Below, piece by piece: positions 9,674 through 27,903 of a stretch of DNA of 32,000 bases. The notes under the pieces were generated by a model, which saw nothing but the letters and a program-made list of their open reading frames with translations, ran no database searches and was not told the DNA's origin. The translations under genes were made by a program, and so were the position numbers. The DNA lies in contig MTSL01000126.1 of the NCBI GenBank assembly GCA_002794465.1, positions 46,155 through 78,154 of the forward strand. The letters run 5' to 3'. Position 1 is the first letter of the stretch; each line of letters opens with the position of its first letter. This stretch comes from Paramicrosporidium saccamoebae KSL3. Its lineage: Eukaryota; Fungi; Cryptomycota.

Positions 9674-10081
9674 ATGTTGCATGATGAGACAACCCAAATC
9701 GAGCAGGCTCGACAGGACCTAAAGGACGCCCAAGATGATCTGACAAATATCCTCAACCACGGACCCGCTGAAATTTTGCAATTTGTACACAAAGTTAGTA
9801 GTATTTATGTGCACAGATGGGAGAATCGCTGGCCAAGATTGTATCCATCCACTTGTGACTGCTCATCATTGCAGGAACGGAATATGAAGCACAATCACAA
9901 CGTGCTGCAACAACAAGGTAGCCTACTTACATGACTAACCATGTCCGTAGCGAGTCACCTGATGGAAAAGGTGGACGCTTTAGAAGCTTCCTTACTAAGC
10001 GCTGGCATGATTGGCGCGACGAGCACGAATGCGAGGGCTGAGACGCCAGATGTGTCTGATGAATACCCAGCCAAGAAATAA
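9674..10081 (+). CDS. Small orphan helical/coiled-coil protein, about 105 aa. Exons 9674-9793, 9817-9840, 9875-9917, 9951-10081
   Basis: Candidate introns 9794-9816 (23 nt), 9841-9874 (34 nt) and 9918-9950 (33 nt, GACTAAC branch point) give MLHDETTQIEQARQDLKDAQDDLTNILNHGPAEILQFVHK|MGESLAKI|ERNMKHNHNVLQQQ|ASHLMEKVDALEASLLSAG...PAKK. AATAAA overlaps the stop codon. No family recognised. Confidence 0.6.
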
Positions 10082-11810: not shown

Positions 11811-11848
11811 CTTCCCCGACATCCAATCAGATCATGCTCCACCGTAAA

Positions 11849-12736
11849 ATGAAAGTGTCAATCATACAAATGTTGGTGGGTGAGGACAAGTCGCTAAATG
11901 TTAAACGAGCAATGGCACGGATTCGGGAGGCAGCTACTGCTGGTGCCAAGCTCGTCATTCTTCCAGTACTGCGTAATGTGGATTAACCGGCAGGAGTGCT
12001 TCAATTCTCCCTACAGCACATCTCTATTTCATCAGTATGCGGAGCAGGTTCCAGAGGGTGACACTTGTGTCCAGCTGGCTGCAGCAGCAAAATCCAACAA
12101 TGTCTGGCTGATTGGCGGCACCATCCCAGAGTGTGCAGATGGAAAGGTGTATAATTGCAGCACCGTCTACTCGCCCTCTGGATTCCTCTTTAAGTATCAA
12201 AAGGTACTATTCTCATCTACACTGACTGATGGTAGATGCATTTATTTGATATTGACATTCCCGGAAAAATTTCCTTCAAAGAGTCGGATACACTGTCTGC
12301 AGGGACTCGATTTCAACATTTCGATTGCGAGAGTTTCCGAATCGGCGTGGGTATATGCTACGACTTGCGATTTCCTGAATTCTCCTCCATCCTCGCCTCC
12401 CGTGGCTGCAATCTTATGGTGTTTCCAAGCGCATTCAACACCACCACCGGCCCCTTGCACTGGCATTTGCTGCAACGCGCACGTGCTGTTGATCAGGCCT
12501 GCTATGTTATCAGTGCTTCGCCTGCCCGGGATCCAACGGCCTCCTACAAGGCATATGGCCACTCAATGGTTGTCTCGCCGATGGGTGAGGTACTGGCCGA
12601 GGCGGGAGAGGGCGAAGAAATTTTGTATGCAGAAATCAATCCTTTGCAAGCTGAAGAAACGCGTCGTAATATCCCAGCTTTGCGACAGAAACGTACTGAC
12701 GTATACACTACCCCATCCATCATTGGGGGTGATTGA
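11849..12736 (+). CDS. NIT3: Nitrilase-superfamily omega-amidase (NIT2/yeast Nit3 type), about 275 aa. Exons 11849-11965, 11994-12203, 12236-12736
   Basis: Introns 11966-11993 (28 nt) and 12204-12235 (32 nt) restore LP|ECFNSPY, YQK|MHLFDIDIPGKISFKESDTL and GICYDLRFPE, the Glu-Lys-Cys triad. An in-frame upstream ATG exists at 11834. Confidence 0.94.
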
Positions 12737-12793
12737 GCGCGACTATAGTTTAAAAGAATAATACATTAACTGGACAAGGGTGCTCGCCTTGCA

Positions 12794-14911
12794 ATGACTG
12801 GACTTGTTCAACGTACGCTACCAACTTGTTTTCGCTTATTATTAGCACGCGCTGACCGCTTCCGCAAGCGAAGCTACCACGATGAGGAACATAGGGAGGA
12901 TCCCATCCGCACCATGGAGCAGACCATCTTCAACCTCGGAAACCCGCATCCTACATTGACCATTGAAGAAGATGTAGCCCAAACAGCGACAATGGTTGTT
13001 GGAGAGATGCAGGACATGGTGCCAGCAGTGGTGGCATGTATTCTTGAGTTGCCACACAAGTTGGTGTATTATGTTCGATTGTTAAAGTTGATTGGGAAGG
13101 AAAAGCCCGACTTTGTCAGTGAAGTGGTCAAGACTGTTGCTGCCCAGTTCCCATCCTTTGCAGCTGCTGGTCCGTGGCGTCATTTTGTGCAGTCGGTGCG
13201 TTTTTATGCGACATGCGTAGCCGAGGGCGTTTTGGGGATGGATTGCTTTGTGGAATTTGGAAAGGCATTACTGGCCTGCACGGGCGGAAAGGCGACTGAT
13301 TTTGTGTTATGGACACTCTGTGCTGCCTTACCATTGGCGCCGGTAACCGAACTGGATGGACTGCTGGCTACTGTTTGTGCCCAACGTGGCGACAATGTTC
13401 CTAAGGATCTTACTGGCGTATGGCATTGCATGAAAAATGCATCCCGGCCGGAACCCCATTCCTCTGATAATACGCTGTCAGTTCCCCTGGGATCTGTGAC
13501 TGCCGTGACGGCTGATGATTCTTGGGATGCCGCCTTTGAACCGCTAATGCTCTTTCCAGATGCCTTCCAGTGTGGCGACTATGAGCAATGGACTGTCTAT
13601 TTGTGGTGTCGTATCCTGCTAGAGTCCATGGAGCTTAATCATCGTCGGTGCGCAGACTTGCTGCTCAACGGTATTCCCGCTTCGTACGGCACCTCTGAGA
13701 AGATTGTTGTTCAGTTCCTGTTTGGGGAGTTGCTCCGCAACCGAAGCAACAAGGTGCCGGCTCTCGTCTATGAGACGCTGCTGATGGACTGTTGTCGACT
13801 ATCAAGGACCTTTCCTCCCAATATGGCAAAAGGTCTATTCATGCTCTATGACCAACTCGAAGAACTCGGCTTTGTGGCTACAGACCGATTGGCCTCGTGG
13901 TTTTCCCACCATCTGAGCAATTTTGATTACAAGTGGAAGTGGGCCGCCTGGTCGGCTGTCCTAACGGCACCGCCAACGTCCATGCAGTACGTCTTTGTGC
14001 GCTTTACACTGAAAAAGTTGGTGCGTCTCTCTTACTATGACCGAGTTGCGCCCACTGTTCCCGAAGAGTTCAAGGTAATGCTGCCTGAGAATGTTTGTCC
14101 ACACTTCAAATTTGCCGACAGCGATGACGATGCAGCAGAGATGGCGGGACGGATAACAGAACAGATTCAGAGCCGAGGGAGCATAGAGGAGATTAAGCGG
14201 TCGTTGGGAGCTGCGGATGATGACGAATTGGACGCTGTGCAGCGTGAAGTGCTCCTGCAAAGTCTCTTGCAAGTGGGCTCCAAGTCCCTTTCGCACATGT
14301 TGACTGTGGTGGAAAAATATCTCTCCCTTTTCCAATTGCTGCTCCCCAAACACGGAGATAAGATGAGTGCCAACATGTTCATCCTCGACCAGCTCTATTC
14401 ATTCTGGCGGAGTAGTATGCTGCATTTTGAGTTTGCCGTTGAGCGTCTCATTAATTACCGCATCTTGTTGCCAAAACACGTTATTCAATGGATATTTGAG
14501 CGTGCGGACGAACAGCTTTGTGATGTTGAGGCCTCCTTTTACGAGGTCGTGGCCCATATTATGGGACGGGGCATTATTATGCGCACCATTCAACAATCGT
14601 CCATGATGTCCTCTATTGCGGCAGCCAAGATGAGTGGACAGCCAGAGGAGAGGATTGCTACAACTGTAAGTAATCTCCAGGCTGAATACGAAGAGACGCT
14701 TGCTCTTGCTGTGGAGAAGCTGGCAACGTTGAGGGAGCAACTGGTCGCCTCTGACGAAATGCTCTCAGCCGTGCACAAGTTTACCTGCGCTTTGATAAAG
14801 GAGATTGTCACGTGCTATCAGGCAGACTGTGTCAAGATTTCTGGAGGCGTGCTGGCCGCGGTAGGACGGAAAATGTCCAATGAAATTAGAGTTATCCTGG
14901 AAGAATTGTAA
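12794..14911 (+). CDS. STO1: Nuclear cap-binding complex large subunit CBP80/NCBP1/Sto1
   Basis: Basic N-terminal RKR cluster, LPHKLVYY, WFSHHLSNFDYKWKW, RLSYYDRV, GSKSLSH. A probable in-frame 33-nt intron lies at 12813-12845 (GTACG...TTAG). Confidence 0.9.
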   Translation: MTGLVQRTLPTCFRLLLARADRFRKRSYHDEEHREDPIRTMEQTIFNLGNPHPTLTIEEDVAQTATMVVGEMQDMVPAVVACILELPHKLVYYVRLLKLIGKEKPDFVSEVVKTVAAQFPSFAAAGPWRHFVQSVRFYATCVAEGVLGMDCFVEFGKALLACTGGKATDFVLWTLCAALPLAPVTELDGLLATVCAQRGDNVPKDLTGVWHCMKNASRPEPHSSDNTLSVPLGSVTAVTADDSWDAAFEPLMLFPDAFQCGDYEQWTVYLWCRILLESMELNHRRCADLLLNGIPASYGTSEKIVVQFLFGELLRNRSNKVPALVYETLLMDCCRLSRTFPPNMAKGLFMLYDQLEELGFVATDRLASWFSHHLSNFDYKWKWAAWSAVLTAPPTSMQYVFVRFTLKKLVRLSYYDRVAPTVPEEFKVMLPENVCPHFKFADSDDDAAEMAGRITEQIQSRGSIEEIKRSLGAADDDELDAVQREVLLQSLLQVGSKSLSHMLTVVEKYLSLFQLLLPKHGDKMSANMFILDQLYSFWRSSMLHFEFAVERLINYRILLPKHVIQWIFERADEQLCDVEASFYEVVAHIMGRGIIMRTIQQSSMMSSIAAAKMSGQPEERIATTVSNLQAEYEETLALAVEKLATLREQLVASDEMLSAVHKFTCALIKEIVTCYQADCVKISGGVLAAVGRKMSNEIRVILEEL

Positions 14912-15033
14912 CCACGGTCATTACAGCTCACCCGCTGATTGGCCTAAATACCAATACAACTACATATGTGATATTAGCAAGATTGTTGCACTAATAAGTC
15001 TATGGAGCTAATGCTGCTAGTGCCATCGCAAAG

Positions 15034-15540
15034 ATGAACTTTGCCTCCATCGGCATTCTCATCATTTTGGCGTTCCTGGCGTCGACGAGTGGGAGACGAC
15101 ATGGCAAGAAGCAGACGGTAAAATTCTCAAGCTCCACCTCCAGCTACAGCAGCACAGAAGAGGACAATGCCCTCTCTCGCCTCCGCGAGGATGTCATCAA
15201 GACGCTCACTACTTACGTCTCCTCCCTACACTCCTCTCTCCGTACAAAGAATCGCGCCCTTGCACGCATCCTGATCTCCCGTCGCATGGGCGAAACGGCA
15301 ATGCACGAGGCGATTCGGGAGTGGGCATTGGGCAGTGTGAATGCGGCAAAGTCACGGGCCAAGGAAGCAGGAGGCGAGCTGAAGACGGCTGTGCAGACGA
15401 GATGGGGAATGAAGGGGGTTGGGAGGAGGAATGCGTTTGCCAGCACAGCCCACAACCATAGAGCCGAGGAGGATCGGACCAACCCGCTCCGAGCCGGCAG
15501 ACCACATGGCAATGATCATGAGTTTACTTTTCCATTATAG
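15034..15540 (+). CDS. Orphan secreted protein, 168 aa (poly-Ser/SL[RK]-motif family member 1)
   Basis: Hydrophobic N-terminus MNFASIGILIILAFLASTSG, then RR, basic segment, Ser tract and helical region with YVSSLHSSLR. Confidence 0.75.
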   Translation: MNFASIGILIILAFLASTSGRRHGKKQTVKFSSSTSSYSSTEEDNALSRLREDVIKTLTTYVSSLHSSLRTKNRALARILISRRMGETAMHEAIREWALGSVNAAKSRAKEAGGELKTAVQTRWGMKGVGRRNAFASTAHNHRAEEDRTNPLRAGRPHGNDHEFTFPL

Positions 15541-15677
15541 CCATTTACAATGGTTTATGTCCATGTCTATGTCTGTGTCTGTGTAATAAAATCCCCACCT
15601 GCGACTATTGAGCCTGAATTCAAAATGTGCTTACAAGGGTTTAGTGTATCAAATTTCATTAATAAGACCAGAGATCT

Positions 15678-15732
15678 TGTGGTTCTATGGTTTTGTGATT
15701 CTGTGGTTCTGTGGTTTTGTAGTTCTATGATT
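15678..15732. repeat. Degenerate 8-nt tandem repeat (near GTTCTGTG), about 6 copies
   Basis: GTTCTATG GTTTTGTG ATTCTGTG GTTCTGTG GTTTTGTA GTTCTATG in the spacer between two secreted-protein genes. Confidence 0.8.
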
Positions 15733-16014
15733 GTTGGAGTCGAGTTTGAACCCCCTTTTCACTGTTGACACTAAAATCTCAATCTATCATTGTTATTCGA
15801 TTTAGTCAACATCTAGGTCCACTTGCAACCTGTGCAGTAGTCAATATTCCAATTCTAGTAAAGGTCGAGATTGCTTTCAATTGGGTAAAGGTATTCTTAG
15901 TCGGGAACGAATATGCCCGATTGATAAATATTTGAAAATATGGAATAATCTACCTAATCAGTGATATTGATCGTCGTTCTATTTAGTTGGCCAAAAGTGA
16001 TATTAAAAAACACA

Positions 16015-16590
16015 ATGATCTGCAGTCTTCAAAGCATTCTCTCATTCTGTCTCTTTTCTCTGGTAACCGTCAGTGCCTCCCGTCGTACCGCTCCCCCTCG
16101 AGGCACCATCCGCCCTCGAGACGTGACTCGTCCCATCTTGCTCGCAAGCTCCTCTTCATCCTCCTCTAGCAGCAGCGAGAGGGCTGGTGGCTTGACACGC
16201 AGGGAGCTTCAGGAGGCCAGACGCTTATTGGAGCCATTCTACAGCACTGTCAATGATTCTCTAAAGTTGAAGGGCGAGCATCTCCTCACTCTCCTTGCAA
16301 AGGCTGGTACGTTGACCCTCGCCGAGGCCGACATCCTGGTTTTTGAAGAGGCTTGTCATCAGGCTCTCACACGTCGTCTCGCAGTCACTAGGGAGGAGCT
16401 CATTGGCATCTATAAGCAGGAGGGCACAGAATTGAAGTCACAGAGAGAGGCAACTAGGGCCTTTAAGGATCAGCTCACTCAGAACACTTTAACACAGGTG
16501 GCCAAGGAAGTAAACGAGGAGCGAAAGCGCAAGCGAGAAGAGCGCGAGGAGGAAAAGAGCGGACGCAAGAGATTCCGCTCTGGGAAATAA
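16015..16590 (+). CDS. Orphan secreted protein, 191 aa, with C-terminal NLS-like cluster (family member 2)
   Basis: First ATG at 16015 (the track start at 15961 is GTG). Signal peptide MICSLQSILSFCLFSLVTVSA, Ser10 tract, FYSTVNDSLK, C-terminal RKRKREEREEEKSGRKRFR. Confidence 0.8.
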   Translation: MICSLQSILSFCLFSLVTVSASRRTAPPRGTIRPRDVTRPILLASSSSSSSSSSERAGGLTRRELQEARRLLEPFYSTVNDSLKLKGEHLLTLLAKAGTLTLAEADILVFEEACHQALTRRLAVTREELIGIYKQEGTELKSQREATRAFKDQLTQNTLTQVAKEVNEERKRKREEREEEKSGRKRFRSGK

Positions 16591-16670
16591 GCATTCATTA
16601 ATTGCATAACACACAATACATTACATTTCTGTAATTTCCATGTTGTCCGCCGATCAGCCAATCAGAGGCC

Positions 16671-19600
16671 ATGTCGAGCGCAGACGAGTTGGAGTTTCAC
16701 GACGCCATTGATGCTGAGGAGACGCTGGCAAAGGTTGAAAGGATTGTAGACGAAATTGTTGAGGAGGTTTTATTTAACGAAAAACCAAGTTTAGCGGAGA
16801 GTGAGGTAGTCTCTCTGAAACCCGCCAAAGAGTCCAAGGACAAAGTCGTTAAGAAGGAGTCGCTCTTGACCGGAACGAAAAATGGTGTAGGGAGCACTGA
16901 GTCTGCGAACAAAAGTGCCAACGACAATTTCGACGAGCAGAGGACTAGATTTGTTGAGCGACTGGATAAAGAAGAAGCTGAGGCGGTCATTGGGGATATT
17001 GAAGGGGCCATAGAGAGTGTAGTTGAAGAGGCCCTGACTGGACTAACTCTTACAGAGGGGTCAGAGTCGGAATTTGAGACCAAGCGCACTGAATTTATTG
17101 CACAATTGGAGAGAGAGAATATGGATGAAATTGTGAGTAACATTGAATGTGCCGTCGAGAGTGTTATTGAGGAAGCCTTAGTAGGTGACGTAGAGTCTAG
17201 CGATGCAGACTTTAACAATGGGAGACTGGGTGATGAGTTGAGCGGTGGAGATTTAAATAATGGGGATGTAAGTGGTGGGGATGTAAATGATGGGGATTTA
17301 AGTGACGAAGAGTCGAATGACGGAGATTTGGATATTGGAAAGTCAAGTGACGGAAAACTTGACAGCCGCCATCAAGAATCTGGTAGCAATGGTCAAAAGC
17401 ACTTGGAGTCTAGAAGCAACGACCCAAGGCCTTTAGAATCTATAAGCAACGATCAAAAGCTTGCAGAATCTAAAAGCAATGATCAAAGGCTTGCAGAATC
17501 TAAGAGCAATGATCAAAAGCTTGCAGAATCTAAAAGCAATGATCAGAAATCCTCCAAGCCTAAAAACAGTGATCAAAGCAAGCCCAAAAGCAATGAACAA
17601 AAACACCCAAACCCTAGAAACGATCATCAAGGACACTCAAAGCCTAAAAACAGTGATCAAGAGCACTTGGAATTGAAAAGCAACGATCAAGAACCCCCAA
17701 AGCCTAAAAGCAATGATCAAGAATCCTTCGAGTCTAAAAGCAACGATCAAGAATCCCAAAAGCCTAAGAGCAATGATCAAGAACATCTAAACTCTAGGAG
17801 TAGTGATCACGAATCCTCCAAACCCAAAAGCAACGATCACGAATCCTCCAAGCCTAAAAGCAATGACCAAGAACCCCTAAAGCCTAAAAGCAATGGCCAA
17901 GAATCCTCAAAGCCTAAGAGTAGTGATCAAGAATCCTCAAAGCCTAGGAGTAGTGATCAAGAACATTCCCAGTCTAAACACAATAATCAAAAGCCCTCAA
18001 AGCCTAAGAACAATGATCAAGAGCCCTCCAAGCCTAAAAGCAATGGCCAAGAATCCTCAAAGCCTAGGAGTAGTGATCAAGAACATTCCCAGTCTAAACA
18101 CAATGATCAAAAGCCCTCAAAGCCTAAAAACAATGATCAAGAGCATCTAAACCTTAGGAGCAGTGACCACGGATCCTCCAAACCCAAAAGCAACGATCAC
18201 GAATCCTCAAAGCCTAGGAGCAATGATCAAGAACTCCTACAGCCTAGAAGCAATGCTCAAGAATTATCCAAGCCTAAGAGCAATGATCAAGAGCCCCCAA
18301 AACCCAAAAACAGCGATCAAGAACCCCCCAAGTCCAATAATAAGGATCAAGAGCACCCAATTGCCGAACAATCAGATAGTAGCACAGACTCGGATCGGAT
18401 ACGAGTGTTGGACAAACTCTCCGCCGCTGCTACCGCTACTGCCAGTAACGCTACTTCTGCAACGACGCAGAATGACTCATATCTGGGATCTTGGGGAGGA
18501 ATGTTTTCAGCGCTAACGGGAATCGGTTCAACTGTCAGTACGCAAGTGGACAAGATTTACGACGCACTGGATCCCAACCTGCCCGAGACAGAGGAAGATC
18601 CGAGATCCATCAAAACTCTACTGGATAAGCTGAGTCCCAACTCGGCGAAATCCAACGACAGCGAGACAAGCGGGTCATGGTTGTCCGGCTTTGACAAGAC
18701 ATTCGACTTTGCATCAGACAAGATTGGGCAAGCATTGATTGGGGGGATCAAAAGACTTGAATCGACGGTGGGGGTGGCAATTGAGCCAATTTCGTCCTCT
18801 AGCAGCGTCAATGAGGTCGTTTACGATGTGGATAATCCCGACGCGATTAGCACGAGTGGCACTAGTGGGGGTGAGGGACCATCACCCGTGTCGCAGGTAA
18901 GTCAGTTGGGGAAGAACATTTATTCAGCGGGAATGAGTACTCTGGGAAAGCTGGGCCGGACGACAGCAGATATGGTAGTGTCTACCAAGGACCGAATTAC
19001 GCCCCTTTTGGAAAAGGACAGCAAAATTGATCGGAGTGAGCTGAAGAAGCCGTTTGCAGTGCTATTCGACGAGTTTTGTGGAAATGACGCTCTGGAAAAG
19101 CTACAGATCCAATCCACACAGGCAGCAATCCAGCTAAAGAGCAAATTGAAGGCATTGAACCCACAACAGCTAAAGAAGGCACAGGGAGAACTAAAGGGTG
19201 TTGGAGCATTACTGGATAACATTGAGGCCAGCGAGGCAAAGCTAGTGTGGCCAGACTTGTTCAGTACGGGGGAAGCTGAAATGGTGACCAAACTGCAGGA
19301 CAGCTTTGTGCATAGTTTGGGAAAAATGGGAAATGTAGACGAATCTCTGGCCGAGCTACGTGATAATGTTGAGACACCCCTCCCCCCAGACATGCCGTCG
19401 CTGTTAGTCTATTTGGGCCGTTTTCATTTGGCCAAAATGCTCTCAGCGGCTCTACATTTAACACTCCTATTGGCACAACCTGACGAGACGGAAATCCACC
19501 GATTGGCCACGGTGCTCCGGGGGAAAATTGAATCCATCACGCAAATAGAAGAGGTGGCTGGATTGGATTCGAATCGTCGAAAGGCCGCGTTGCAATTGTT

Positions 19601-19688
19601 GGCGACGGATGTATCACAGGCACAAACGACGCTAAGAGATGCGCTACTGACTCTGCAGCCGCAGCTGAGATTGGCCCGACTGCAATAA
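16671..19688 (+). CDS. 1005-aa protein: FFAT-like N-terminus, acidic duplicated helices, about 30 decapeptide repeats and a FAM114A/DUF719-like C-terminal region
   Basis: Uninterrupted 3-kb ORF. C-terminal GSWGG, GMSTLGKLGRTTADMV and LFDEFCGNDALEKL recall FAM114A segments (WGSWG, GLDALEFIGKKTM, LFDEFQGLSHLEAL) recalled from memory. The ORF is solid; the family call is moderate. Confidence 0.7.
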   Translation: MSSADELEFHDAIDAEETLAKVERIVDEIVEEVLFNEKPSLAESEVVSLKPAKESKDKVVKKESLLTGTKNGVGSTESANKSANDNFDEQRTRFVERLDKEEAEAVIGDIEGAIESVVEEALTGLTLTEGSESEFETKRTEFIAQLERENMDEIVSNIECAVESVIEEALVGDVESSDADFNNGRLGDELSGGDLNNGDVSGGDVNDGDLSDEESNDGDLDIGKSSDGKLDSRHQESGSNGQKHLESRSNDPRPLESISNDQKLAESKSNDQRLAESKSNDQKLAESKSNDQKSSKPKNSDQSKPKSNEQKHPNPRNDHQGHSKPKNSDQEHLELKSNDQEPPKPKSNDQESFESKSNDQESQKPKSNDQEHLNSRSSDHESSKPKSNDHESSKPKSNDQEPLKPKSNGQESSKPKSSDQESSKPRSSDQEHSQSKHNNQKPSKPKNNDQEPSKPKSNGQESSKPRSSDQEHSQSKHNDQKPSKPKNNDQEHLNLRSSDHGSSKPKSNDHESSKPRSNDQELLQPRSNAQELSKPKSNDQEPPKPKNSDQEPPKSNNKDQEHPIAEQSDSSTDSDRIRVLDKLSAAATATASNATSATTQNDSYLGSWGGMFSALTGIGSTVSTQVDKIYDALDPNLPETEEDPRSIKTLLDKLSPNSAKSNDSETSGSWLSGFDKTFDFASDKIGQALIGGIKRLESTVGVAIEPISSSSSVNEVVYDVDNPDAISTSGTSGGEGPSPVSQVSQLGKNIYSAGMSTLGKLGRTTADMVVSTKDRITPLLEKDSKIDRSELKKPFAVLFDEFCGNDALEKLQIQSTQAAIQLKSKLKALNPQQLKKAQGELKGVGALLDNIEASEAKLVWPDLFSTGEAEMVTKLQDSFVHSLGKMGNVDESLAELRDNVETPLPPDMPSLLVYLGRFHLAKMLSAALHLTLLLAQPDETEIHRLATVLRGKIESITQIEEVAGLDSNRRKAALQLLATDVSQAQTTLRDALLTLQPQLRLARLQ
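17401..18360 (+). repeat. Coding minisatellite, 30-nt unit (consensus near AAGCCTAAAAGCAATGATCAAGAATCCTCC = KPKSNDQESS), about 30 copies
   Basis: Directly visible: AATGATCAA-type cores recur at the same column of the 60-nt lines. One shortened 24-nt unit near 17560-17585. Confidence 0.97.
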
Positions 19689-19935
19689 AATAGATTCGTC
19701 TTGATCAGTGACCGTTAACGGGGTGGGTTAGATAGTATGAACGACATGGGGGTTGAAAAGCAGCGTTAGGACGGGTAAAATGTAGTGAGTGCTGTGCAGC
19801 AAGTGTAGCGTAGTGCAGTGGGTTTAGTGCAACTCGACTCCATTCGACCCGATTTACCTCAATCCAGTTCAATCCAACTCTGATCGATTCACCTCACGCC
19901 CCGTTCTATCTCAATTCAATTCGACAAAGTGGACT

Positions 19936-21345
19936 ATGACTTTTATATGGAGAGCTTATTTGATATTAATACTTCCTTTAATGTTTCTACTTGCACAACA
20001 GACAGTGTATTGGGGCAAACCAAAGAAATACAAGGACATGTGGCGTGAACGGGGAATTCTGACGACACCTGCAGATCACGAGACTGGCGTTGGAAAGATG
20101 AAGATTTATGTGGAACGCTATGCCAACAGTCATACAACTACTAATAATCTGATTCTTCTGGCGGGCGGTCCGGGCCAGCGCAGTTCCGTCTGGCGCGCCG
20201 ATCTGCCCCATTTCACAAAATTCGGTTGGGCCGTCTATCTAATGGACCAACGCGGTGTTGGAAGGAGCACCCGTTTGTATAACGCAACGGATCGCACGTG
20301 GCGACGACGAAAAGTGCCCTCCTCAGCAGGCGATTACACCATTACGAGTACAGCACATGATGTGGCTTTGCTGGCCCAATCCTTAACGGGAAAAGTGTCG
20401 TTGTTGGGGGTTTCTTATGGTGGTCTGTTGGCGGCACGTACTGTGTCGATTTATCCGAATCTCTTTGCATGGCTGATTTTGGACAGTCCCTCCATGATCC
20501 GGGGCCGTTTCCACCCGTCCAATGACGCCCTCTTCTGGGCCGCTTGTAGTGAGGACCAGCATTGTTCTGCCAAAATAGGCAGTGTTCCTGCTGCACGTAG
20601 AGCATATCATCGTGTGATGACGGGACGTCGGGAGAATCAGTGCACAGCAAAGCTGAGTATGGATCTTGTGCGACCCTTACTGCGGGGAACTGTCAGTGAT
20701 CATCAGAATGGTCGACATCCCTCCATGTTGGTTGTGCCTCTGATGCTGCAGGCGTACAAATGTTCCAATCCGTCCTTTTTCAAAAGCCGTATTATCACTG
20801 CTCTACGACGTATCACTCAAAGTGGCCGTATCCGCGAAGGTCGTCACACACACCAATTGCACGACTTTTATAATTCGTGGATTTGCGTCGCTGAAATCTT
20901 CTCCTATCCGCACCGACCACGACAGTGTCGGCGGGGATTACACACAGTGGCGGATCAATGTGGCAATTGGCAGCATTATTATCGCGCTTACGAAGTATTC
21001 CGACGTGCTCTCTATTCGCCCGATCGGTTCCTCTACAATCCCATCAAGACAAATCGCACGCGGGTTGTGGTGTTGGCAGGGGCGCTTGATCTGGTCACTC
21101 CGCCCCCCGCCACCATCAAATGGCTGGCCAACATTACCGCCCGCGCCAAGACGCTGTTATTGTATAATGACATGGGTCATGCCCTTGCTCCTACTGCTCC
21201 CTGTCTGAATCTTCTTTTCCGGGCCATCACCCTCTCCGCGCGACGCTATATGCCACTCTTACGACGCTGTCTTCAAAAACACAATGCGTGCAAAACGGGT
21301 TGGAACTTTGATGGCGAATACTCGTTTGCCCGCAATTGGTGGTGA
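19936..21345 (+). CDS. Secreted alpha/beta-hydrolase, S33/TAP-like peptidase (paralog 1, Arg-rich, no C-terminal anchor)
   Basis: Signal peptide or anchor, LLAGGPG, MDQRGVGRS, GVSYGG nucleophile, AGALDLVTP (Asp), MGHAL (His). Confidence 0.88.
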   Translation: MTFIWRAYLILILPLMFLLAQQTVYWGKPKKYKDMWRERGILTTPADHETGVGKMKIYVERYANSHTTTNNLILLAGGPGQRSSVWRADLPHFTKFGWAVYLMDQRGVGRSTRLYNATDRTWRRRKVPSSAGDYTITSTAHDVALLAQSLTGKVSLLGVSYGGLLAARTVSIYPNLFAWLILDSPSMIRGRFHPSNDALFWAACSEDQHCSAKIGSVPAARRAYHRVMTGRRENQCTAKLSMDLVRPLLRGTVSDHQNGRHPSMLVVPLMLQAYKCSNPSFFKSRIITALRRITQSGRIREGRHTHQLHDFYNSWICVAEIFSYPHRPRQCRRGLHTVADQCGNWQHYYRAYEVFRRALYSPDRFLYNPIKTNRTRVVVLAGALDLVTPPPATIKWLANITARAKTLLLYNDMGHALAPTAPCLNLLFRAITLSARRYMPLLRRCLQKHNACKTGWNFDGEYSFARNWW

Positions 21346-21440
21346 TGTCGTGGTGGAGATGCCACGGTAGCAGCCAATAAAACACGCTCAAACATTGACC
21401 ATAACACTGGCCATAACACCAGTTATAGTATCAATTGATA

Positions 21441-21860
21441 ATGCTCCACATGTTAAGGAGGGGTCGGCAGTACACTGTTAACAGTCGGAACTTGGTGCTC
21501 GACCTACTGGTGGATCTTAGCAGACGAGTGGCCCATTTGGAGGGACAGGTCCGCGTCCTTTCCGAAACCCAACGGAAATTGCAATCTGTCCAAACCCTCC
21601 TCCAATTTGGCGAACACTTCAAGTCCCTGCACCTGCAGCTCATTAAACGCGGCGGGATTGAAGACCCGACGATGCGAAGAGCCTTGAGACGTCATGGAAT
21701 TAGCGTAACCGATGTGCTCCGGTTGGCGGAAATATGTCAAAAACGCAACGAGGTTGCCCATCCGACCAGCGTACCAGACTTGACTGACACTGATGTGGAA
21801 ATTGTCCGGTTATTTGTCAAGATTCAAGGATTTCTAAAGGCCACTGAGACGAAACTATGA
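21441..21860 (+). CDS. Small protein with N-terminal coiled coil and HEPN-like RNxxAH motif
   Basis: First ATG at 21441 (alternative 21450). Heptads LLVDLSRRVAHLEGQVRVLSETQRKL and RNEVAHP at 21744-21764. Coding status is likely; the HEPN call is inference. Confidence 0.6.
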   Translation: MLHMLRRGRQYTVNSRNLVLDLLVDLSRRVAHLEGQVRVLSETQRKLQSVQTLLQFGEHFKSLHLQLIKRGGIEDPTMRRALRRHGISVTDVLRLAEICQKRNEVAHPTSVPDLTDTDVEIVRLFVKIQGFLKATETKL

Positions 21861-21886
21861 GGGTCAGCATGAAATAGGAGGGTGTC

Positions 21887-22027
21887 TGAATGTCAATATA
21901 GCGGGCACTTTTGAATTTCAATATAGCGGCTACTTTTGGAGTTCAGTGTAGCGGGTACTTTTGAATTTCAACATGGCGGATACTTTTAGATTTCAATGTA
22001 CCATGCCGCCCGGAGTTCAATGCAATG
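21887..22027. repeat. Degenerate 25-nt tandem array, 5-6 copies (near TGAATTTCAATATAGCGGNTACTTT)
   Basis: Units start at 21887, 21912, 21937, 21962 and 21987, with a decayed unit at about 22011. Confidence 0.9.
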
Positions 22028-22141
22028 TTCTGTCTCTTTTAACTTTTAACTTAAAATGCAATTCCCACTCTGATTGGCTGGAGAATAAACAAACGTGACA
22101 TTGTTTATACATTATGGCCTGATTGGGCAAGGCAAATTTAC

Positions 22142-23824
22142 ATGCATCTTCTATCCATTATCATTGCAATCTTTGCCATAGTCTTTAAAGACGTCTTGGC
22201 TGGCGCTCCCAAGCTGAGCTGGGTTACGGCGAGCGCGGGGGGCTGCAAATGCACAAGTCTTTCTCCCTCCTCCACTGTGCTCACCGTCCCGGCCCAATAC
22301 ACTCCCCCGGGGGGCGAGGTAAGACTCTTCATCAAACGCTATATGACCAGTGGCAGCACAGCCACCACTCATCTGATCATGCTCCCTGGTGGGCCAGGCC
22401 AGTCCGAAACCATCCTGGAGGGCCATGTCCAGAATATTGCCAATTTCCTGGGAGGCTCAGTGGCACTATATCTGGTAGACATGCGAGGGGTTGCCCAATC
22501 CCAGCCCATCGTTCCCCAGGGCGACTTTTCATGGCGGAACAATCTAGACGCTGTGGCAAAGAGCGCTCCCTTTCCAATAGGCACCATCACCCTCTCCAAT
22601 GCTGCCCAAGATGTGCTGCAGTTAGCCAAGGCCATCAAGGCTTCTCCTGAATTTGCCGCTGATTCAAAACTTTCCGTATTTGGCGTCTCATTTGGTGCTG
22701 TATGGGCCTACCGGGCGCTGCAGCTGGACAGCTCACTCTTCCATGCGGCCATTCTGGACGGCATTCTGGCCTTTGAGGGCTTATTCGATCCTGAAAATGA
22801 CGAATCACTATTTGAAAACTGCGCCCGCCATCCATACTGCAAGGAACAGTTTGGCGGTGATCCAAAGAATGCTCGGAAAATGTTTGCAGAGATTTTGAAT
22901 CCGGCTCTAAATGGATGCACTGCCATCCTCGACCAGGTGTTGGGGAAGATGAAAAATCAACAAATGTCACGAGAGTATCGACTCTATGAATTGCTGCTGC
23001 CCCTATTGGAAGGAAGCAAGTCATTGGGCAATCGATACCATTCCACTCAGCTAATGCTCGCCTTTATCAAGACCACTCACCATTGCGCCACCCCAAGTGC
23101 ATATGGAGCCATCATCAGTGAAGTGGCAGGGATGGGTGGTCACACTGCTGCTGGCGTGATTGCACGCGCTGCTGATGCAAGAACAATGAACATGCTAGTC
23201 AACAATCTGCTTTTCTGCAGTGAGCCATATAACCTCACAGCCGGCCCTACGTCCCCCTCTTGTGGAAAACCAACTCTCATGCATCATTGCATGACTCGTT
23301 TTGTTTTCAATGCGCAATATCAGTCTCTCCTCAAGCCATACGTTGTACCCCGGGATCCCATATGGAATAAGAAGCCAAGCGGGGTCAAACTGTACTTTGT
23401 GCATGGAAAAGTGGACTTGGTGACGCCGTATCGCGCGGCAGCACGACTGGCTCAATCGGTTGGCGGACGTATGTTGGCCTATGACAATTTGGGCCATTCG
23501 CTCATCAGTGCAGGGCAATGTGCTCGGCCCATTTATCGAGAGGCGTTGTTGGGTGAGTCTTCTGGTGCCACTAACTCGTGTCTCGCCACCGTGAATAGTG
23601 CCCCTCTGGACTGGACCTTTAGAATGATGCCAAAATACACTGCATGGTTTGACTCTGCCATTGATGCTAACAAACATTACATTCCCGATCCGCCCAATCC
23701 ATCAGGCGGAGGTGGTGGTTCTATCCTTTGGATTGTGTCAATCATGGCAATATTGCTCATTGCCGGTGGTGCAGCGGCGGTATTCATGTGGAAGCGAAAG
23801 GCTACACCCAAAGTCGCCGAATAA
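22142..23824 (+). CDS. Type I membrane-anchored alpha/beta-hydrolase, S33/TAP-like (paralog 2)
   Basis: Signal peptide, MLPGGPG, DMRGVAQS, GVSFGA, HGKVDLVTP, LGHSL, Pro/Gly linker, TM helix ILWIVSIMAILLIAGGAAAVFMW and short basic tail. Confidence 0.88.
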   Translation: MHLLSIIIAIFAIVFKDVLAGAPKLSWVTASAGGCKCTSLSPSSTVLTVPAQYTPPGGEVRLFIKRYMTSGSTATTHLIMLPGGPGQSETILEGHVQNIANFLGGSVALYLVDMRGVAQSQPIVPQGDFSWRNNLDAVAKSAPFPIGTITLSNAAQDVLQLAKAIKASPEFAADSKLSVFGVSFGAVWAYRALQLDSSLFHAAILDGILAFEGLFDPENDESLFENCARHPYCKEQFGGDPKNARKMFAEILNPALNGCTAILDQVLGKMKNQQMSREYRLYELLLPLLEGSKSLGNRYHSTQLMLAFIKTTHHCATPSAYGAIISEVAGMGGHTAAGVIARAADARTMNMLVNNLLFCSEPYNLTAGPTSPSCGKPTLMHHCMTRFVFNAQYQSLLKPYVVPRDPIWNKKPSGVKLYFVHGKVDLVTPYRAAARLAQSVGGRMLAYDNLGHSLISAGQCARPIYREALLGESSGATNSCLATVNSAPLDWTFRMMPKYTAWFDSAIDANKHYIPDPPNPSGGGGGSILWIVSIMAILLIAGGAAAVFMWKRKATPKVAE

Positions 23825-23997
23825 CCGCCAAAGCGGGTGGAATGACAGGTTAAGAATGATCTATTTTTCTGATACTTTCTTAATCCGACCCTATTTCGAT
23901 ATCCTCTATGCACGGCTATGTCTCTAAGTAAATTCTGTAATTTTTCTTGACAAGATGCAATCTTTAGATCGATCTCGTATAACATAATTGGTAGAAG

Positions 23998-24033
23998 CAA
24001 TCAGATTGGCCATGCTGTGAGCTGGGATATAAA
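23998..24033 (+). promoter_or_regulatory. CCAAT-type box plus TATA box upstream of the 24061 gene
   Basis: CAATCAGATTGG at 23998-24009 (ATTGG is a reverse CCAAT) and TATAAA at 24028-24033, 27 nt before the ATG. This independently supports 24061 as the true start. Confidence 0.6.
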
Positions 24034-24060
24034 GCAGTTTGTGACGCAGCATGCAGCAGA

Positions 24061-24902
24061 ATGATTGTATCAATCGCCTCGCTTTTCTGCCTTTTTGTTA
24101 CGTTCACTGACGCTAGTCGAATTCTGGTATGGCTGTGGCCACTCTTAATATGTAGAGAAATGGTGGCATTCCAGCATCAGCCGGACCGATTATGCTGACT
24201 AATGTGTTAACTATCGGTACTTTTAATTCAAAAAATCCTACTTCTACGTTGAATTCATCCACTGATGGAAAGCGACGAAAATCCATACCAAGAGTCCGCA
24301 CCTTGCTAGACAAGTCTGTTCCTGCCGGTCAAAAGGAAGCAGTGAACGGGGCAGAGCCCAAGAAAAAGAGCAAGAAAGCGCAACCTGCCAAGTCTGGCTC
24401 ACGTGGCTCTGGCAAGCGCCCATCCAGTCCCGCTACCACATCCCAGTCTTCAAGGGCGAGCAATAGAGCTGCATCTTCCAGCTCCTCTTCGACTGATTTT
24501 CCTGTCCCGGACTTGAAGAGCACTGCTACAAAGTCTTTCGAAGAGTCCTTTACAAAGAGCGTCAATCAATCTCTAAGGTCATACCACAAGTCTGTGAAAG
24601 ATGCTTACAAGGCCAAATTGCATAGCAAGATTCGTGCCCAGGGGGACTTGGAGCAGCAATGCAAGAAGCTGCAAGACACCCTCAACAAAAAGTTGAGCGA
24701 GAACCAAAAGTTAAAGGCCGAGCTGAAAGAGTCTAATCAAAAATTGCACGAGTTACAAAATGCGGTTGGGACGGCACGTAACTTTATAAAGTCGGCACTA
24801 CGATCCAGTAAGGTAATCCAGAAGTCGGATGGTTGCGAGAGTGAAGCGAAAGAGTCCCCTGAAGAATCTGAATCCAGCGCGGCTAGTGATTCTTCCTCGT
24901 AA
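24061..24902 (+). CDS. Orphan secreted Ser/Lys-rich coiled-coil protein, 270 aa (family member 3). Exons 24061-24126, 24156-24902
   Basis: Intron 24127-24155 (GTATGG...TGTAG, 29 nt) joins signal-peptide exon MIVSIASLFCLFVTFTDASRIL in frame to RNGGIPASAGPI and the 236-aa track ORF. Contains KRRK, KKKSKK, Ser6 tract, FTKSVNQSLR and a coiled coil. Confidence 0.8.
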
Positions 24903-25149: not shown

Positions 25150-25689
25150 ATGAAGTTCATTGCCACTTCCGTCTTATTCACGTCTGTTGTCGCAGTCCTA
25201 TCAAAGGCAAAATTTGGTGACGAGCTGCGCCAACTGCAACACGAACTTGTTAGTAACAATGCTGGAGTAGCCGCCATTTCACAACAGCTCGAGGGATGCC
25301 CGGAGGGCCAACTGACTGAGTGTGCTCTGGGCCTCCTAAGCCAGTATGGAGAGGTGGACCCCGCTATCCGTTTTAACCTGGAAACTCTCGGAAACTCTGC
25401 CACGAGCGTCCGTAGCGAGTTGCAGAGTTGCTCCGCCACGGGTAACCAGGAGGCGTGCAAGAACAGTGCCACTACCAAGGCGCTCCCTGAACTCGTAAAG
25501 AATGCCAAGCAAGTCTTGATGACTGTGAAAATGGCGTACCCTGGGGCATTTGAAATTCCCGAGATGCGCAAGTTGGAGGCAATACTGGCCAAATATGAAG
25601 CAGATAACGAGTCAACTGACTTTCAAGACGAGCTCAAGGAGAGTCTCCAGACGCTTGAAACTCGCTTCCGAAGCTTTAGCATTGCCTAA
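25150..25689 (+). CDS. Orphan secreted alpha-helical protein, 179 aa, with two Cys pairs
   Basis: Signal peptide MKFIATSVLFTSVVAVLS, amphipathic helices, C-x7-C and C-x8-C. Confidence 0.8.
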   Translation: MKFIATSVLFTSVVAVLSKAKFGDELRQLQHELVSNNAGVAAISQQLEGCPEGQLTECALGLLSQYGEVDPAIRFNLETLGNSATSVRSELQSCSATGNQEACKNSATTKALPELVKNAKQVLMTVKMAYPGAFEIPEMRKLEAILAKYEADNESTDFQDELKESLQTLETRFRSFSIA

Positions 25690-26211: not shown

Positions 26212-27903
26212 ATGAAGCTATTCGCGTTGGCCGTCTTCCTTGGCGTGGCCTCGGCAAAGAACCTCAAATGGGAAACTTACAAGCCAAAGGATGTTGACGC
26301 AACGAAATACATTATCACTGCAGCCAAGCTGAACACTGGCCAAAGCCACGAAACAAGAGTTGTCAGGTTCTCTCGCGGCCATCCCTCTGCACACATTTTT
26401 CTGCTCCCTCCGGCACCTGGACAGGGCGCAAAGTACTGGGAATCCGAGGTGGAAAAGCTAAGAGCAGTGTATGGAGAGGATTTTGTGTTGTATGCAGTCG
26501 ACCTAAGGGGCACGACAAACGGGACGCCATTTTTCGATGAATCATCTGGGAACTGGAACTCGCTGGACGAGGACCTCAAGTCGCAGAGCGGCAAGTTGTC
26601 AATTTCGTCGTTGAATGTTAGTGGAATGGCCAGTGATTTAGAGAGACTTGTGAATCGAGTAAAGGACGATCCCGGATTTGCCGGCAAAGTCTATCTTCAT
26701 GCCCGCTCCTTTGGGGCCCTAATTGCCAAAAAAGTGCTGGAAAGCTCTGATAAGACTTATTCTGCCGTAGTTTTCGAATCCAGCCTGGTTCCTGGCTCCT
26801 GGACACACATCCAGAATGACTCTAGTTTCCTAAAATTGTGTGAAAGTGACGACTTTTGCAGGCACCAGTTTAATGGAATGAGCCCACTCCAAATGCGAAA
26901 CGCTGTGGCCTCTATTGGGTCACCAGGATATAACGAATGCTCCACTGCTCTCATGGAAACGCTGAAGAAGGAATCCATCGGCCTGCTGCCTTCAGATGCA
27001 TCCGATTGGGTTCGAGTTCAGGAATTCCTGCAGCCATTCTTTCAAGGCAAAATTCAGATTGGCGACTATCATTCGGCCATGATCACCCTTCCGTTTCTAA
27101 GTGCAACATATCTCTGCCCAAGCGTCGATACATACAAAAAAGATATTTTGCCAAAGATGATAAAGTTTGTCAAGGACGCAAAGAATCCCTTTTCACGATA
27201 CACCACGTTCGGCTCCGAGGTGGATATTAACCGTTTTGCCAACGCTTATTTGATGATGTACGAAGTGTTTAACATGGGGCTCGAGAAGGATCATCCGTGC
27301 CAAGGAGCGGCCCCCTTGGGGCTGGCCTCGCCCTGCATCCTCTACAAATATTACCACAAATACATTAAGCAGTTCAAAAAGATTTTGGGGAAGCATTCGC
27401 ATGACTATTCCTCTGTCAAGAACAGTAATACGAAAATGTTCTTTATCGGCGGGGCATTGGACCTTGTCACTCCGCTCTCTACAACATCCGAGTTTCATGA
27501 CAAATCGACTGGCATGGAAAAGCGCCTGCTTAAATTCCAGAACCTCGGCCATCATCCACTGAACAAAGGCGCCTGTGCAAGGGAGATTGGACGGGAGATT
27601 TTGGGAAAAGCTGGCTCTGGTGATACTGATGCTTGCATGAAACGTGCTAATGCTGAAAAGCTTGATTGGAAGATGCCAAAGATTAGCTACATTTCAAGCT
27701 GGTGGTCTGGCAAGGAACTAGCACCTAGCACGACCGTTCCGCCCAAAGTCGACGTAGATGATGGGAAGAGCAAGACCAAAGCATTGTATTATGTTGCCCT
27801 TGTAGTGGGAATTGTTGCCGTATTGGCAGTTACCGGACATGTCTGCTATACCCTGTACACGCGGCGAAAGGCTCGAAATGACGATACATATAGTGTCGCC
27901 TAG
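26212..27903 (+). CDS. Type I membrane-anchored alpha/beta-hydrolase, S33/TAP-like (paralog 3, divergent motifs)
   Basis: First ATG at 26212 (MKLFALAVFLGVASA signal peptide). LLPPAPG, DLRG, ARSFGA, GGALDLVTP, LGHHP, C-terminal TM helix and tail RRKARNDDTYSVA. Confidence 0.87.
   Translation: MKLFALAVFLGVASAKNLKWETYKPKDVDATKYIITAAKLNTGQSHETRVVRFSRGHPSAHIFLLPPAPGQGAKYWESEVEKLRAVYGEDFVLYAVDLRGTTNGTPFFDESSGNWNSLDEDLKSQSGKLSISSLNVSGMASDLERLVNRVKDDPGFAGKVYLHARSFGALIAKKVLESSDKTYSAVVFESSLVPGSWTHIQNDSSFLKLCESDDFCRHQFNGMSPLQMRNAVASIGSPGYNECSTALMETLKKESIGLLPSDASDWVRVQEFLQPFFQGKIQIGDYHSAMITLPFLSATYLCPSVDTYKKDILPKMIKFVKDAKNPFSRYTTFGSEVDINRFANAYLMMYEVFNMGLEKDHPCQGAAPLGLASPCILYKYYHKYIKQFKKILGKHSHDYSSVKNSNTKMFFIGGALDLVTPLSTTSEFHDKSTGMEKRLLKFQNLGHHPLNKGACAREIGREILGKAGSGDTDACMKRANAEKLDWKMPKISYISSWWSGKELAPSTTVPPKVDVDDGKSKTKALYYVALVVGIVAVLAVTGHVCYTLYTRRKARNDDTYSVA

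Follow-up and report, generated by a model that had tools for sequence, protein, structure and literature searches.

Lineage-specific secreted protein families are common among intracellular parasites. For the serine-rich secreted proteins considered here, the closest described systems are the RxLR(-dEER)/WY effectors of oomycetes and PTP1 and PTP2 of the microsporidia, of which PTP1 is Pro-rich and PTP2 is Lys-rich with conserved Cys residues. The genus Paramicrosporidium is placed near the base of the Microsporidia; to our knowledge, nothing is known about its exported proteins, and a literature search found no secretome analysis of the genus. Paramicrosporidium saccamoebae is an intranuclear parasite of Saccamoeba amoebae, and its genome has been deposited as MTSL00000000 (PMC5701793). 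Here we analyse a stretch of 32,000 nucleotides (nt) of its contig MTSL01000126.1 (hereafter the window; all positions refer to it), in which three genes, termed G1 (15034-15540), G2 (16015-16590) and G3 (24061-24126 joined to 24273-24902), encode proteins with a predicted signal peptide, a Ser tract and a short motif. On balance, we take the three to be paralogues belonging to an undescribed family of secreted, basic, helical proteins, in which the motif forms the packing core of a helix rather than a targeting signal.

The layout common to the three proteins had been pointed out in an earlier note on this DNA, and it is found in all three open reading frames (ORFs): a signal peptide, a Ser tract, a spacer of 19–20 amino acids (aa) and a ten-residue motif. 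In the window, a hydrophobic leader is combined with a Ser tract only in the ORFs of G1, G2 and G3. The signal peptides and their cleavage sites were read by eye and are predicted to end in TSG before RR (G1), VSA before SRR (G2) and TDA before SRIL (G3), and a small residue occupies position -1 in all G1 orthologues. The Ser tracts cover aa 32-41 of G1, aa 45-54 of G2 and aa 95-100 of the G3 ORF 24192-24902. They are followed, after 19, 20 and 19 residues, respectively (±1 residue, as the tract can be taken to end at slightly different places), by the motifs YVSSLHSSLR (15214-15243, aa 61-70 of G1), FYSTVNDSLK (16237-16266, aa 75-84 of G2) and FTKSVNQSLR (24549-24578, aa 120-129 of the same G3 ORF). 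The features of G1 and G2 are, with position and strand:

15034..15540, +, G1, complete single-exon gene, ORF of 168 aa
15034..15093, +, G1 predicted signal peptide, aa 1-20, ending ...ASTSG before RR, hydrophobic core H10=3.36
15127..15165, +, G1 Ser tract with its acidic end (SSSTSSYSSTEED)
15214..15249, +, G1 motif in its extended form YVSSLHSSLRTK, the top cross-subfamily conserved window
16015..16590, +, G2, complete single-exon gene, 191 aa, with which the deposited annotation agrees
16015..16077, +, G2 predicted signal peptide, aa 1-21, ending ...VSA before SRR
16147..16179, +, G2 Ser tract plus Glu (S10-E)
16237..16272, +, G2 motif in its extended form FYSTVNDSLKLK
16522..16578, +, G2 basic tail at the C-terminus, RKRKREEREEEKSGRKRFR, similar to a bipartite nuclear localization signal (NLS)

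When the parts following the Ser tracts are compared for the best ungapped ten-residue block common to all three proteins (sum-of-pairs BLOSUM62, 500 shuffles), the top block is the motif of the earlier note, with a score of 66 that is reached anywhere in 0.6% of the shuffles. If the offset of the block from the Ser tract is held equal (±1), the shuffles have a mean of 20, a standard deviation of 7 and a maximum of 48. The significance needed for homology was reached only after orthologues had joined the comparison. An hhalign alignment of the mature G1 branch with the mature G2 branch, from which the signal peptides had been removed, gives P=3.6e-5 over 75 collinear columns that run from the Ser tract through the superposed motifs into helix 2; together with the results for G3 given below, this supports the proposal that the three proteins form one family. 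The motifs of G2 and G3 also agree in DNA (gtc aat nnn tct cta a.g), a match that had been noticed before and is real, with a probability of about 0.005 by chance given the shared residues. It was considered as a conserved DNA or RNA element and rejected, because the G2 orthologue in the related sequence L002 uses other codons (GTC CAA GAC ACT TTG AAG).

Seven more members, from five environmental assemblies, were obtained by an exhaustive profile search and contig look-ups. The hmmsearch, with a profile made from G1, G2, two G2 orthologues and G3 exon 2, covered 1.84 billion representatives and returned seven proteins and nothing else: G2, the deposited model of G3 (P0008), the G2-like proteins P0009 and P0010, and the G1-like proteins P0011, P0012 and P0013. 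A profile search had been suggested in the earlier note, and all of its matches are either window members or, in the case of P0009 to P0013, proteins with a layout identical to that of the window proteins. From the P. saccamoebae genome only G2 and G3 were recovered, G1 being concealed in a fused gene model. The G2 orthologues are P0005, P0006, P0007, P0009 and P0010, and orthologues with 64–70% identity to G2 occur in a Logan assembly and a JGI metagenome. No further member was found in the 32 kb and its flanks, and neither word-indexed homologue searches with G1 and with G3 nor scans of metagenome contigs with the G2 alignment and with G3 exon 2 gave a match. Within what was searchable, the family thus appears to comprise 2–3 genes per genome and, as far as present databases show, it appears to be restricted to Paramicrosporidium-like Rozellomycota.

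The genomic setting of the G1-G2 pair is conserved as well. L005 has the gene order SUN (on the - strand), G-alpha, CN_hydrolase, MIF4G (705 aa) and a G1-like gene, L006 has a G1 orthologue, a G2 orthologue and an orthologue of the 1005-aa neighbour of G2, and L007 has the C-terminus of MIF4G followed by a G1-like and a G2-like gene. L002 begins with ...NEHEFTFPL and a stop codon, which is the conserved G1 C-terminus, followed by the G2 orthologue. As this gene order is found in lineages with an NCBP1 that is 49–57% identical to that of P. saccamoebae, it shows the G1-G2 pair to be the product of an old tandem duplication, retained beside the NCBP1 (MIF4G) gene in several taxa. The G2 orthologues of L006 and L007 carry introns of 39 nt (1780-1818) and 48 nt (3083-3130), respectively, neither of which is present in P. 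saccamoebae G2; the L007 intron interrupts the motif itself, between FKVSLN and AKG, and the L006 intron precedes the basic tail. G1 orthologues are 33–42% identical where NCBP1 is 49–57% identical, so that G1 evolves somewhat faster than NCBP1, whereas G2 is 67% identical in L002 compared with 51% for the neighbouring gene. The family had been described as old and fast-evolving, with the motif as its only conserved element. This description overstates the case, because G2 is better conserved than its neighbour and conservation within each branch extends over the whole helical domain.

It is between the G1 and G2 branches that the motif stands out: together with the Ser tract, it forms the two best conserved windows. 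The pattern [FY]xx[ST][VL][NH]xSL[RK] proposed in the earlier note matches none of the seven orthologues, because position 6 can be N, H, Q, R, L, A or K and position 8 can be S or T. A form that describes the family is [FY]xx[ST][VIL]xx[ST][LI][KR]xK, from which the most divergent member departs by having M, E, F and N. The residues that show no or hardly any variation among ten members are, in G1 numbering, S36, S37, S40, L58, L69, K72, L76, L80, A104 and R108. L58, L69 and L80 are spaced by 11 residues and form, together with Y61, L65, K72 and L76, a 3-4-4 pattern that is typical of 11-residue (hendecad) helical repeats. An AlphaFold2 model of G1, based on the family alignment, contains helices at aa 40-82 and aa 87-123, with a predicted local distance difference test score (pLDDT) of 76–85 over aa 40-125:

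15151..15279, +, G1 predicted helix 1, aa 40-82, holding the spacer and the motif (AlphaFold2)
15292..15402, +, G1 predicted helix 2, aa 87-123, with the conserved A104 and R108 (AlphaFold2)

Helix 1 starts where the Ser tract ends, and the motif occupies its middle part. The fixed spacing can thus be accounted for without a signal, because the spacer is the first half of the predicted helix 1. Measured from the last Ser/Thr run to the motif, the spacer is 18–20 residues long in nine of the ten members other than G3; in the remaining one, the G1 orthologue of L006, it is 23 residues, or 20 if SSYDS is counted within the tract. A Foldseek search of the PDB with the G1 model found generic helical hairpins only, all with E>=0.23 and nothing at E<=1e-3. 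Pfam gave no match at E<=0.1 for the three proteins and, at E<=1, only unrelated families below their cut-offs among the ten members, and sequence searches of the PDB gave nothing credible, the best match being UPF0352 with E=0.006. Having no relative in Pfam, among PDB sequences or by Foldseek against the PDB, the family is undescribed and, as the earlier note had supposed, unnamed.

The third gene requires a spliced model and is more divergent. Its features are:

24061..24126, +, G3 exon 1, predicted signal peptide (MIVSIASLFCLFVTFTDA before SRIL), homologous to the G2 signal peptide
24127..24272, +, G3 proposed intron, 146 nt, GTATGG...ACTGATggaaAG, AAG acceptor, CTGAC and ACTGAT branch-like sites
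24273..24902, +, G3 exon 2, 209 aa, with a basic Lys-rich linker, Ser tract, two motif copies, heptad coiled-coil region and acidic Ser-rich tail
24474..24497, +, G3 Ser tract SSSSSSTD
24549..24578, +, G3 motif copy 1, FTKSVNQSLR (the copy of the earlier note; extended form FTKSVNQSLRSY), spacer 18-19
24582..24617, +, G3 motif copy 2, YHKSVKDAYKAK, 11 residues downstream of copy 1 and 29 after the tract

The likeness of the G2 and G3 signal peptides (FCLF...ASR), to which attention had already been drawn, holds up: the local score is 46, compared with at most 25 for unrelated pairs from the window, and the shuffle p is 2e-4. The upstream exon is hence very probably real. The pair 24127-24272 retains the exon up to and including ...ASRIL and offers a good donor (GTATGG), which no other in-frame GT..AG pair does. 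The proposed splice junction (24118-24126 joined to 24273-24275, aa 20-23 of the spliced product) creates the string RILR directly after the predicted cleavage site, which is most likely a coincidence. In exon 2, a position-specific scoring matrix (PSSM) of the family gives copy 1 a score of 16.2 (shuffle p=0.005) and copy 2 a score of 22.1 (p<0.0005), and neither copy fits every position of the family-wide motif. Profiles built without G3, both in hmmsearch and in hhalign, align copy 2 with the family motif, whereas the spacer rule favours copy 1; G3 is therefore read as carrying a duplicated 11-residue repeat. The spacer described as fixed is thus found nearly throughout the G1 and G2 branches, but in G3 the copy preferred by the profiles lies 29 residues after the tract. 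Aligned by hhalign with the combined G1 and G2 profile, G3 gives P=2.3e-4 (probability 44%). G3 would thus be a divergent paralogue, seen so far only in P. saccamoebae; the evidence for its membership, although weaker, is drawn from parts of the protein that are independent of each other.

In the reading that we favour, each protein consists of four parts, namely a cleavable signal peptide, a short and usually basic linker, a Ser tract with an acidic end, and a helical domain, which starts directly after the tract and is predicted to form a hairpin of two long helices in G1. The motif would be the central 11-residue repeat of helix 1 and would present a packing stripe to helix 2 or to a partner, and the first half of helix 1 would be the 'fixed spacer', where insertions and deletions would not be tolerated. 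G1 and G2 would have arisen by the tandem duplication described above, and G3 would be a more divergent copy, distinguished by its 5' intron, by the duplication of the motif repeat and by a coiled-coil extension. The mature proteins, which have isoelectric points of 9.5–10.9 and 0–2 Cys, would leave the parasite via the secretory pathway and enter the nucleus of the host, where the parasite grows; a basic, Cys-poor profile is more typical of proteins of reducing compartments than of wall or apoplastic proteins. The G2 branch would carry a conserved tail that resembles a bipartite NLS. As S-x-E closes the Ser tract in eight of 11 members, the tract may be a site of modification, either phosphorylation at S-x-E or O-glycosylation such as O-mannosylation. 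The homology, the synteny, the layout and the predicted fold are shown by the comparisons above; function and delivery, and with them a possible effector role, are what we infer from these sequence properties.

Several points weigh against this reading. The signal peptides were judged by eye only, and the linker of the L005 member is acidic rather than basic. Compared pairwise, the three window proteins are not significantly similar by BLASTP, and Smith-Waterman comparisons of the parts following the Ser tracts, evaluated with shuffles, give p=0.08–0.26, so the earlier impression that the three look unrelated was a fair one. The AlphaFold model of G2, based on four sequences, has a pLDDT of 49, is too poor for use and breaks the helix inside the motif. 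For G3, hmmsearch with a hidden Markov model (HMM) of G1 and G2 yields -0.7 to -2.9 bits (shuffle p=0.017), and homologue, exhaustive profile and metagenome contig searches returned no orthologue. The proposed G3 intron is unusually long compared with the introns of 39–48 nt in L006 and L007 and the short introns of the gene at 9674-10081. Also, an exact look-up found neither the spliced 231-aa G3 product nor the 168-aa G1 product in the collection, which therefore provides no transcript-derived support for them.

The pairwise results, and the fact that the first pattern was made post hoc from the same three sequences, could be taken to mean that all three similarities arose by chance from low-complexity, Ser/Leu/Lys-rich sequence. 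We consider this scarcely credible, as it is contradicted by the shuffle tests, the profile-profile P of 3.6e-5, the PSSM matches, and the existence of members with the same layout in five other assemblies with conserved synteny. A narrower version holds that only G1 and G2 are related and that G3 is an unrelated Ser-rich coiled-coil protein with a chance likeness and a relic as its upstream 'exon'. The bit scores against the G1 and G2 HMM, the BLASTP results, the failure to find a G3 orthologue, the start of the deposited model at 24192 and the two candidate registers, which make the 'fixed spacer' ambiguous, all agree with it. It is nonetheless very unlikely, given the agreement between the signal peptides (p=2e-4), the hhalign result (P=2.3e-4) and the two PSSM matches (p<=0.005), the occurrence of a Ser tract, with Asp after it, where one would be expected, the presence of an in-frame intron with a good donor, and the restriction of the combination of signal peptide and such a tract to G1, G2 and G3 in the window.

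The remaining alternatives concern what the proteins do. According to the earlier note, the motif could be a host-targeting, processing or oligomerisation signal of fast-evolving effectors, analogous to RxLR or WY modules, with the rest of the protein free to vary. Its conservation, together with that of the Ser tract, between the G1 and G2 branches, its constant distance from the N-terminal module and the Cys-poor, basic character of the proteins, which is shared by many host-internal effectors, would fit such a signal, and oligomerisation via a helical stripe would even fit the helical-hairpin model. But the motif lies amid a predicted 43-residue helix instead of a disordered leader, the whole helical domain is conserved among orthologues, there are 2–3 members per genome within what was searchable, and RxLR-dEER is absent, R.LR strings being scattered, including the RILR at the G3 exon junction. 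Moreover, a parasite that grows inside the host nucleus may need no added translocation signal for its secreted proteins. We regard this view as decidedly unlikely. A more specific form of the helical-family reading is that the module of signal peptide, Ser/acidic tract and helix-1 repeat characterises a dedicated set of basic, Cys-free helical proteins for the host nucleus, where the G2 branch would be kept, or to which it would be sent, by its NLS-like tail; the proteins would act on host chromatin or nuclear RNA. A classical bipartite NLS has two basic clusters about 10–12 residues apart; two-cluster basic tails (KRKR...RKRFR, KRRRR, RKRRR) occur in five of six G2-branch members, and a strict bipartite NLS pattern matches two of them. 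We offer this as a tentative possibility; if it were true, Paramicrosporidium-like Rozellomycota would have in these proteins their first candidates for host-directed factors. The main rival of the favoured reading, ranked below this possibility as less likely, is that the proteins are extracellular spore components, that is, the missing polar-filament or spore-wall proteins, with a Ser tract that is O-mannosylated as in PTP1 and a G1-G2 pair that parallels ptp1-ptp2. Signal peptides, Ser tracts, a conserved tandem pair and basic helical proteins that could self-assemble would all suit a spore structure. In addition, P. saccamoebae has a polar filament, yet the HMMs for microsporidian polar filament proteins used by the genome authors found nothing in its proteome (PMC5701793), a negative limited by the fact that in this proteome G1 is fused and G3 lacks its signal peptide. 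On the other hand, the family resembles no Pfam entry in sequence or in profile, the 0–2 Cys and the absence of Pro-rich repeats are unlike PTP2 and PTP1, respectively, and an NLS-like tail such as that of G2 would be odd in a wall protein.

The gene models on which these comparisons depend differ in part from those deposited. For G2, a protein on MTSL01000126.1 of assembly GCA_002794465.1 is identical to the 191 aa encoded by 16015-16590. G1, on the other hand, is joined in the deposited annotation to the upstream CN_hydrolase and NCBP1/MIF4G sequences in one model of 1135 aa (11834-15540). The deposited 436-aa model P0008 (24192-25689) combines the G3 ORF, from the ATG at 24192, with the next signal-peptide gene (25150-25689) via the 5' flank of the latter, and does not include exon 1 of G3 with the signal peptide. 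Both fusions are apparently artefacts, because the MIF4G ORF has its own stop codon after 705 aa, here and in L005, and each downstream ORF has its own ATG and hydrophobic leader. Two fused models can thus be corrected, one of which hides G1 in an NCBP1 model, while the other strips G3 of its signal peptide.

The family genes are interleaved with genes for three paralogous alpha/beta hydrolases (S33/TAP-like; 19936-21345, 22142-23824 and 26212-27903), which share 24–25% identity (E 4e-43 and 5e-53). Each hydrolase has an N-terminal signal peptide, and two of the three also have a C-terminal hydrophobic anchor. The region from 15 to 28 kb has ten genes on the + strand, and these include all seven of its secretory-pathway genes. 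The small ORF at 25150-25689 (179 aa) begins with a clear signal peptide (MKFIATSVLFTSVVAVLSKA); it has neither a Ser tract nor the motif, no Pfam match, and is negative with the family HMM. Downstream of G2, 16671-19688 encodes the 1005-aa protein mentioned above, with about 29 tandem 30-nt repeats (17470-18323) that specify a ten-residue unit like KSNDQExSKP; the L006 orthologue has different repeats, ETKRDKF.EK.EH, in the same place. A 136-aa ORF at 21450-21860, which is an annotated gene, has a sub-threshold match to HEPN RiboL-PSP (E 1e-3, 19.5 bits compared with a cut-off of 28.4). Two short tandem repeats are intergenic: one of 25 nt (TGAATTTCAATATAGCGGGTACTTT, 4.4 copies) at 21887-21997, upstream of the hydrolase gene 22142, and one of 8 nt (TGTGGTTC, about six copies) at 15678-15726 between G1 and G2, just 3' of G1.

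Upstream of G2, about 94 nt (15892-15985) form a block with 83% DNA identity to L002, compared with 73% for the coding sequence. It is found 5' of the G2 orthologues in L002 and L003 and is nearly invariant among the three taxa, but L006 and L007, which are more distant, have lost it. Rfam has no match to the block, which is probably a promoter. Scans of the whole window for Rfam families and for tRNAs gave no hits, and a search for a shared promoter element 5' of G1, G2 and G3, in which the 5' regions of G1, its orthologues and G3 were aligned, found nothing convincing.

As lineage-specific secreted families are common among intracellular parasites, the proteins described here represent a new family of a familiar kind and no new principle. 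A conserved, syntenic family of secreted helical proteins nevertheless provides concrete candidates for localisation and interaction studies, and its profile can be used to recognise related uncultured parasites in metagenomes.

Among known proteins, the best Foldseek neighbours of the G1 model are the designed helical-hairpin oligomers 5izs and 5j0k, SMAC and the MacA/HlyD hairpins, which likewise consist of two long antiparallel helices; with all E>=0.23, this is a likeness of shape that does not justify the claim of a relationship. Secretory phosphoproteins with Ser-x-Glu clusters, of the casein and SCPP type, also have a signal peptide and, after it, a run of Ser with Glu or Asp at its end; this is a resemblance at the level of strings, without homology and in a different taxon, to which the frequent S-x-E of the family corresponds. 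With the RxLR(-dEER)/WY effectors of oomycetes, the family shares an N-terminal signal peptide, a short conserved motif that follows this peptide at a more or less constant distance, and Cys-poor, helical proteins encoded in gene clusters. However, it has no RxLR-dEER, which in such effectors would be expected within about 60 residues after the signal peptide: G1 and G2 lack RxLR, the RILR of G3 comes without dEER, and the matches in orthologues are scattered. While RxLR is located in a disordered leader, the family motif is found inside a long predicted helix. The predicted two-helix hairpin has no WY-type match in Pfam or by Foldseek against the PDB, and the 2–3 genes, counted among the 1.84 billion representatives and in the 32 kb with its flanks, would contrast with RxLR repertoires of hundreds. 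Also, the organism is a fungus-related rozellomycotan and not an oomycete. Compared with microsporidian PTP1 and PTP2, the members are nearly Cys-free, not Pro-rich, predicted to form a helical hairpin and without sequence similarity, but they share with them a signal peptide, Ser/Thr-rich stretches like those that are O-mannosylated in PTP1, a basic charge as in PTP2, and the arrangement as a syntenic tandem pair of fast-evolving secreted proteins.

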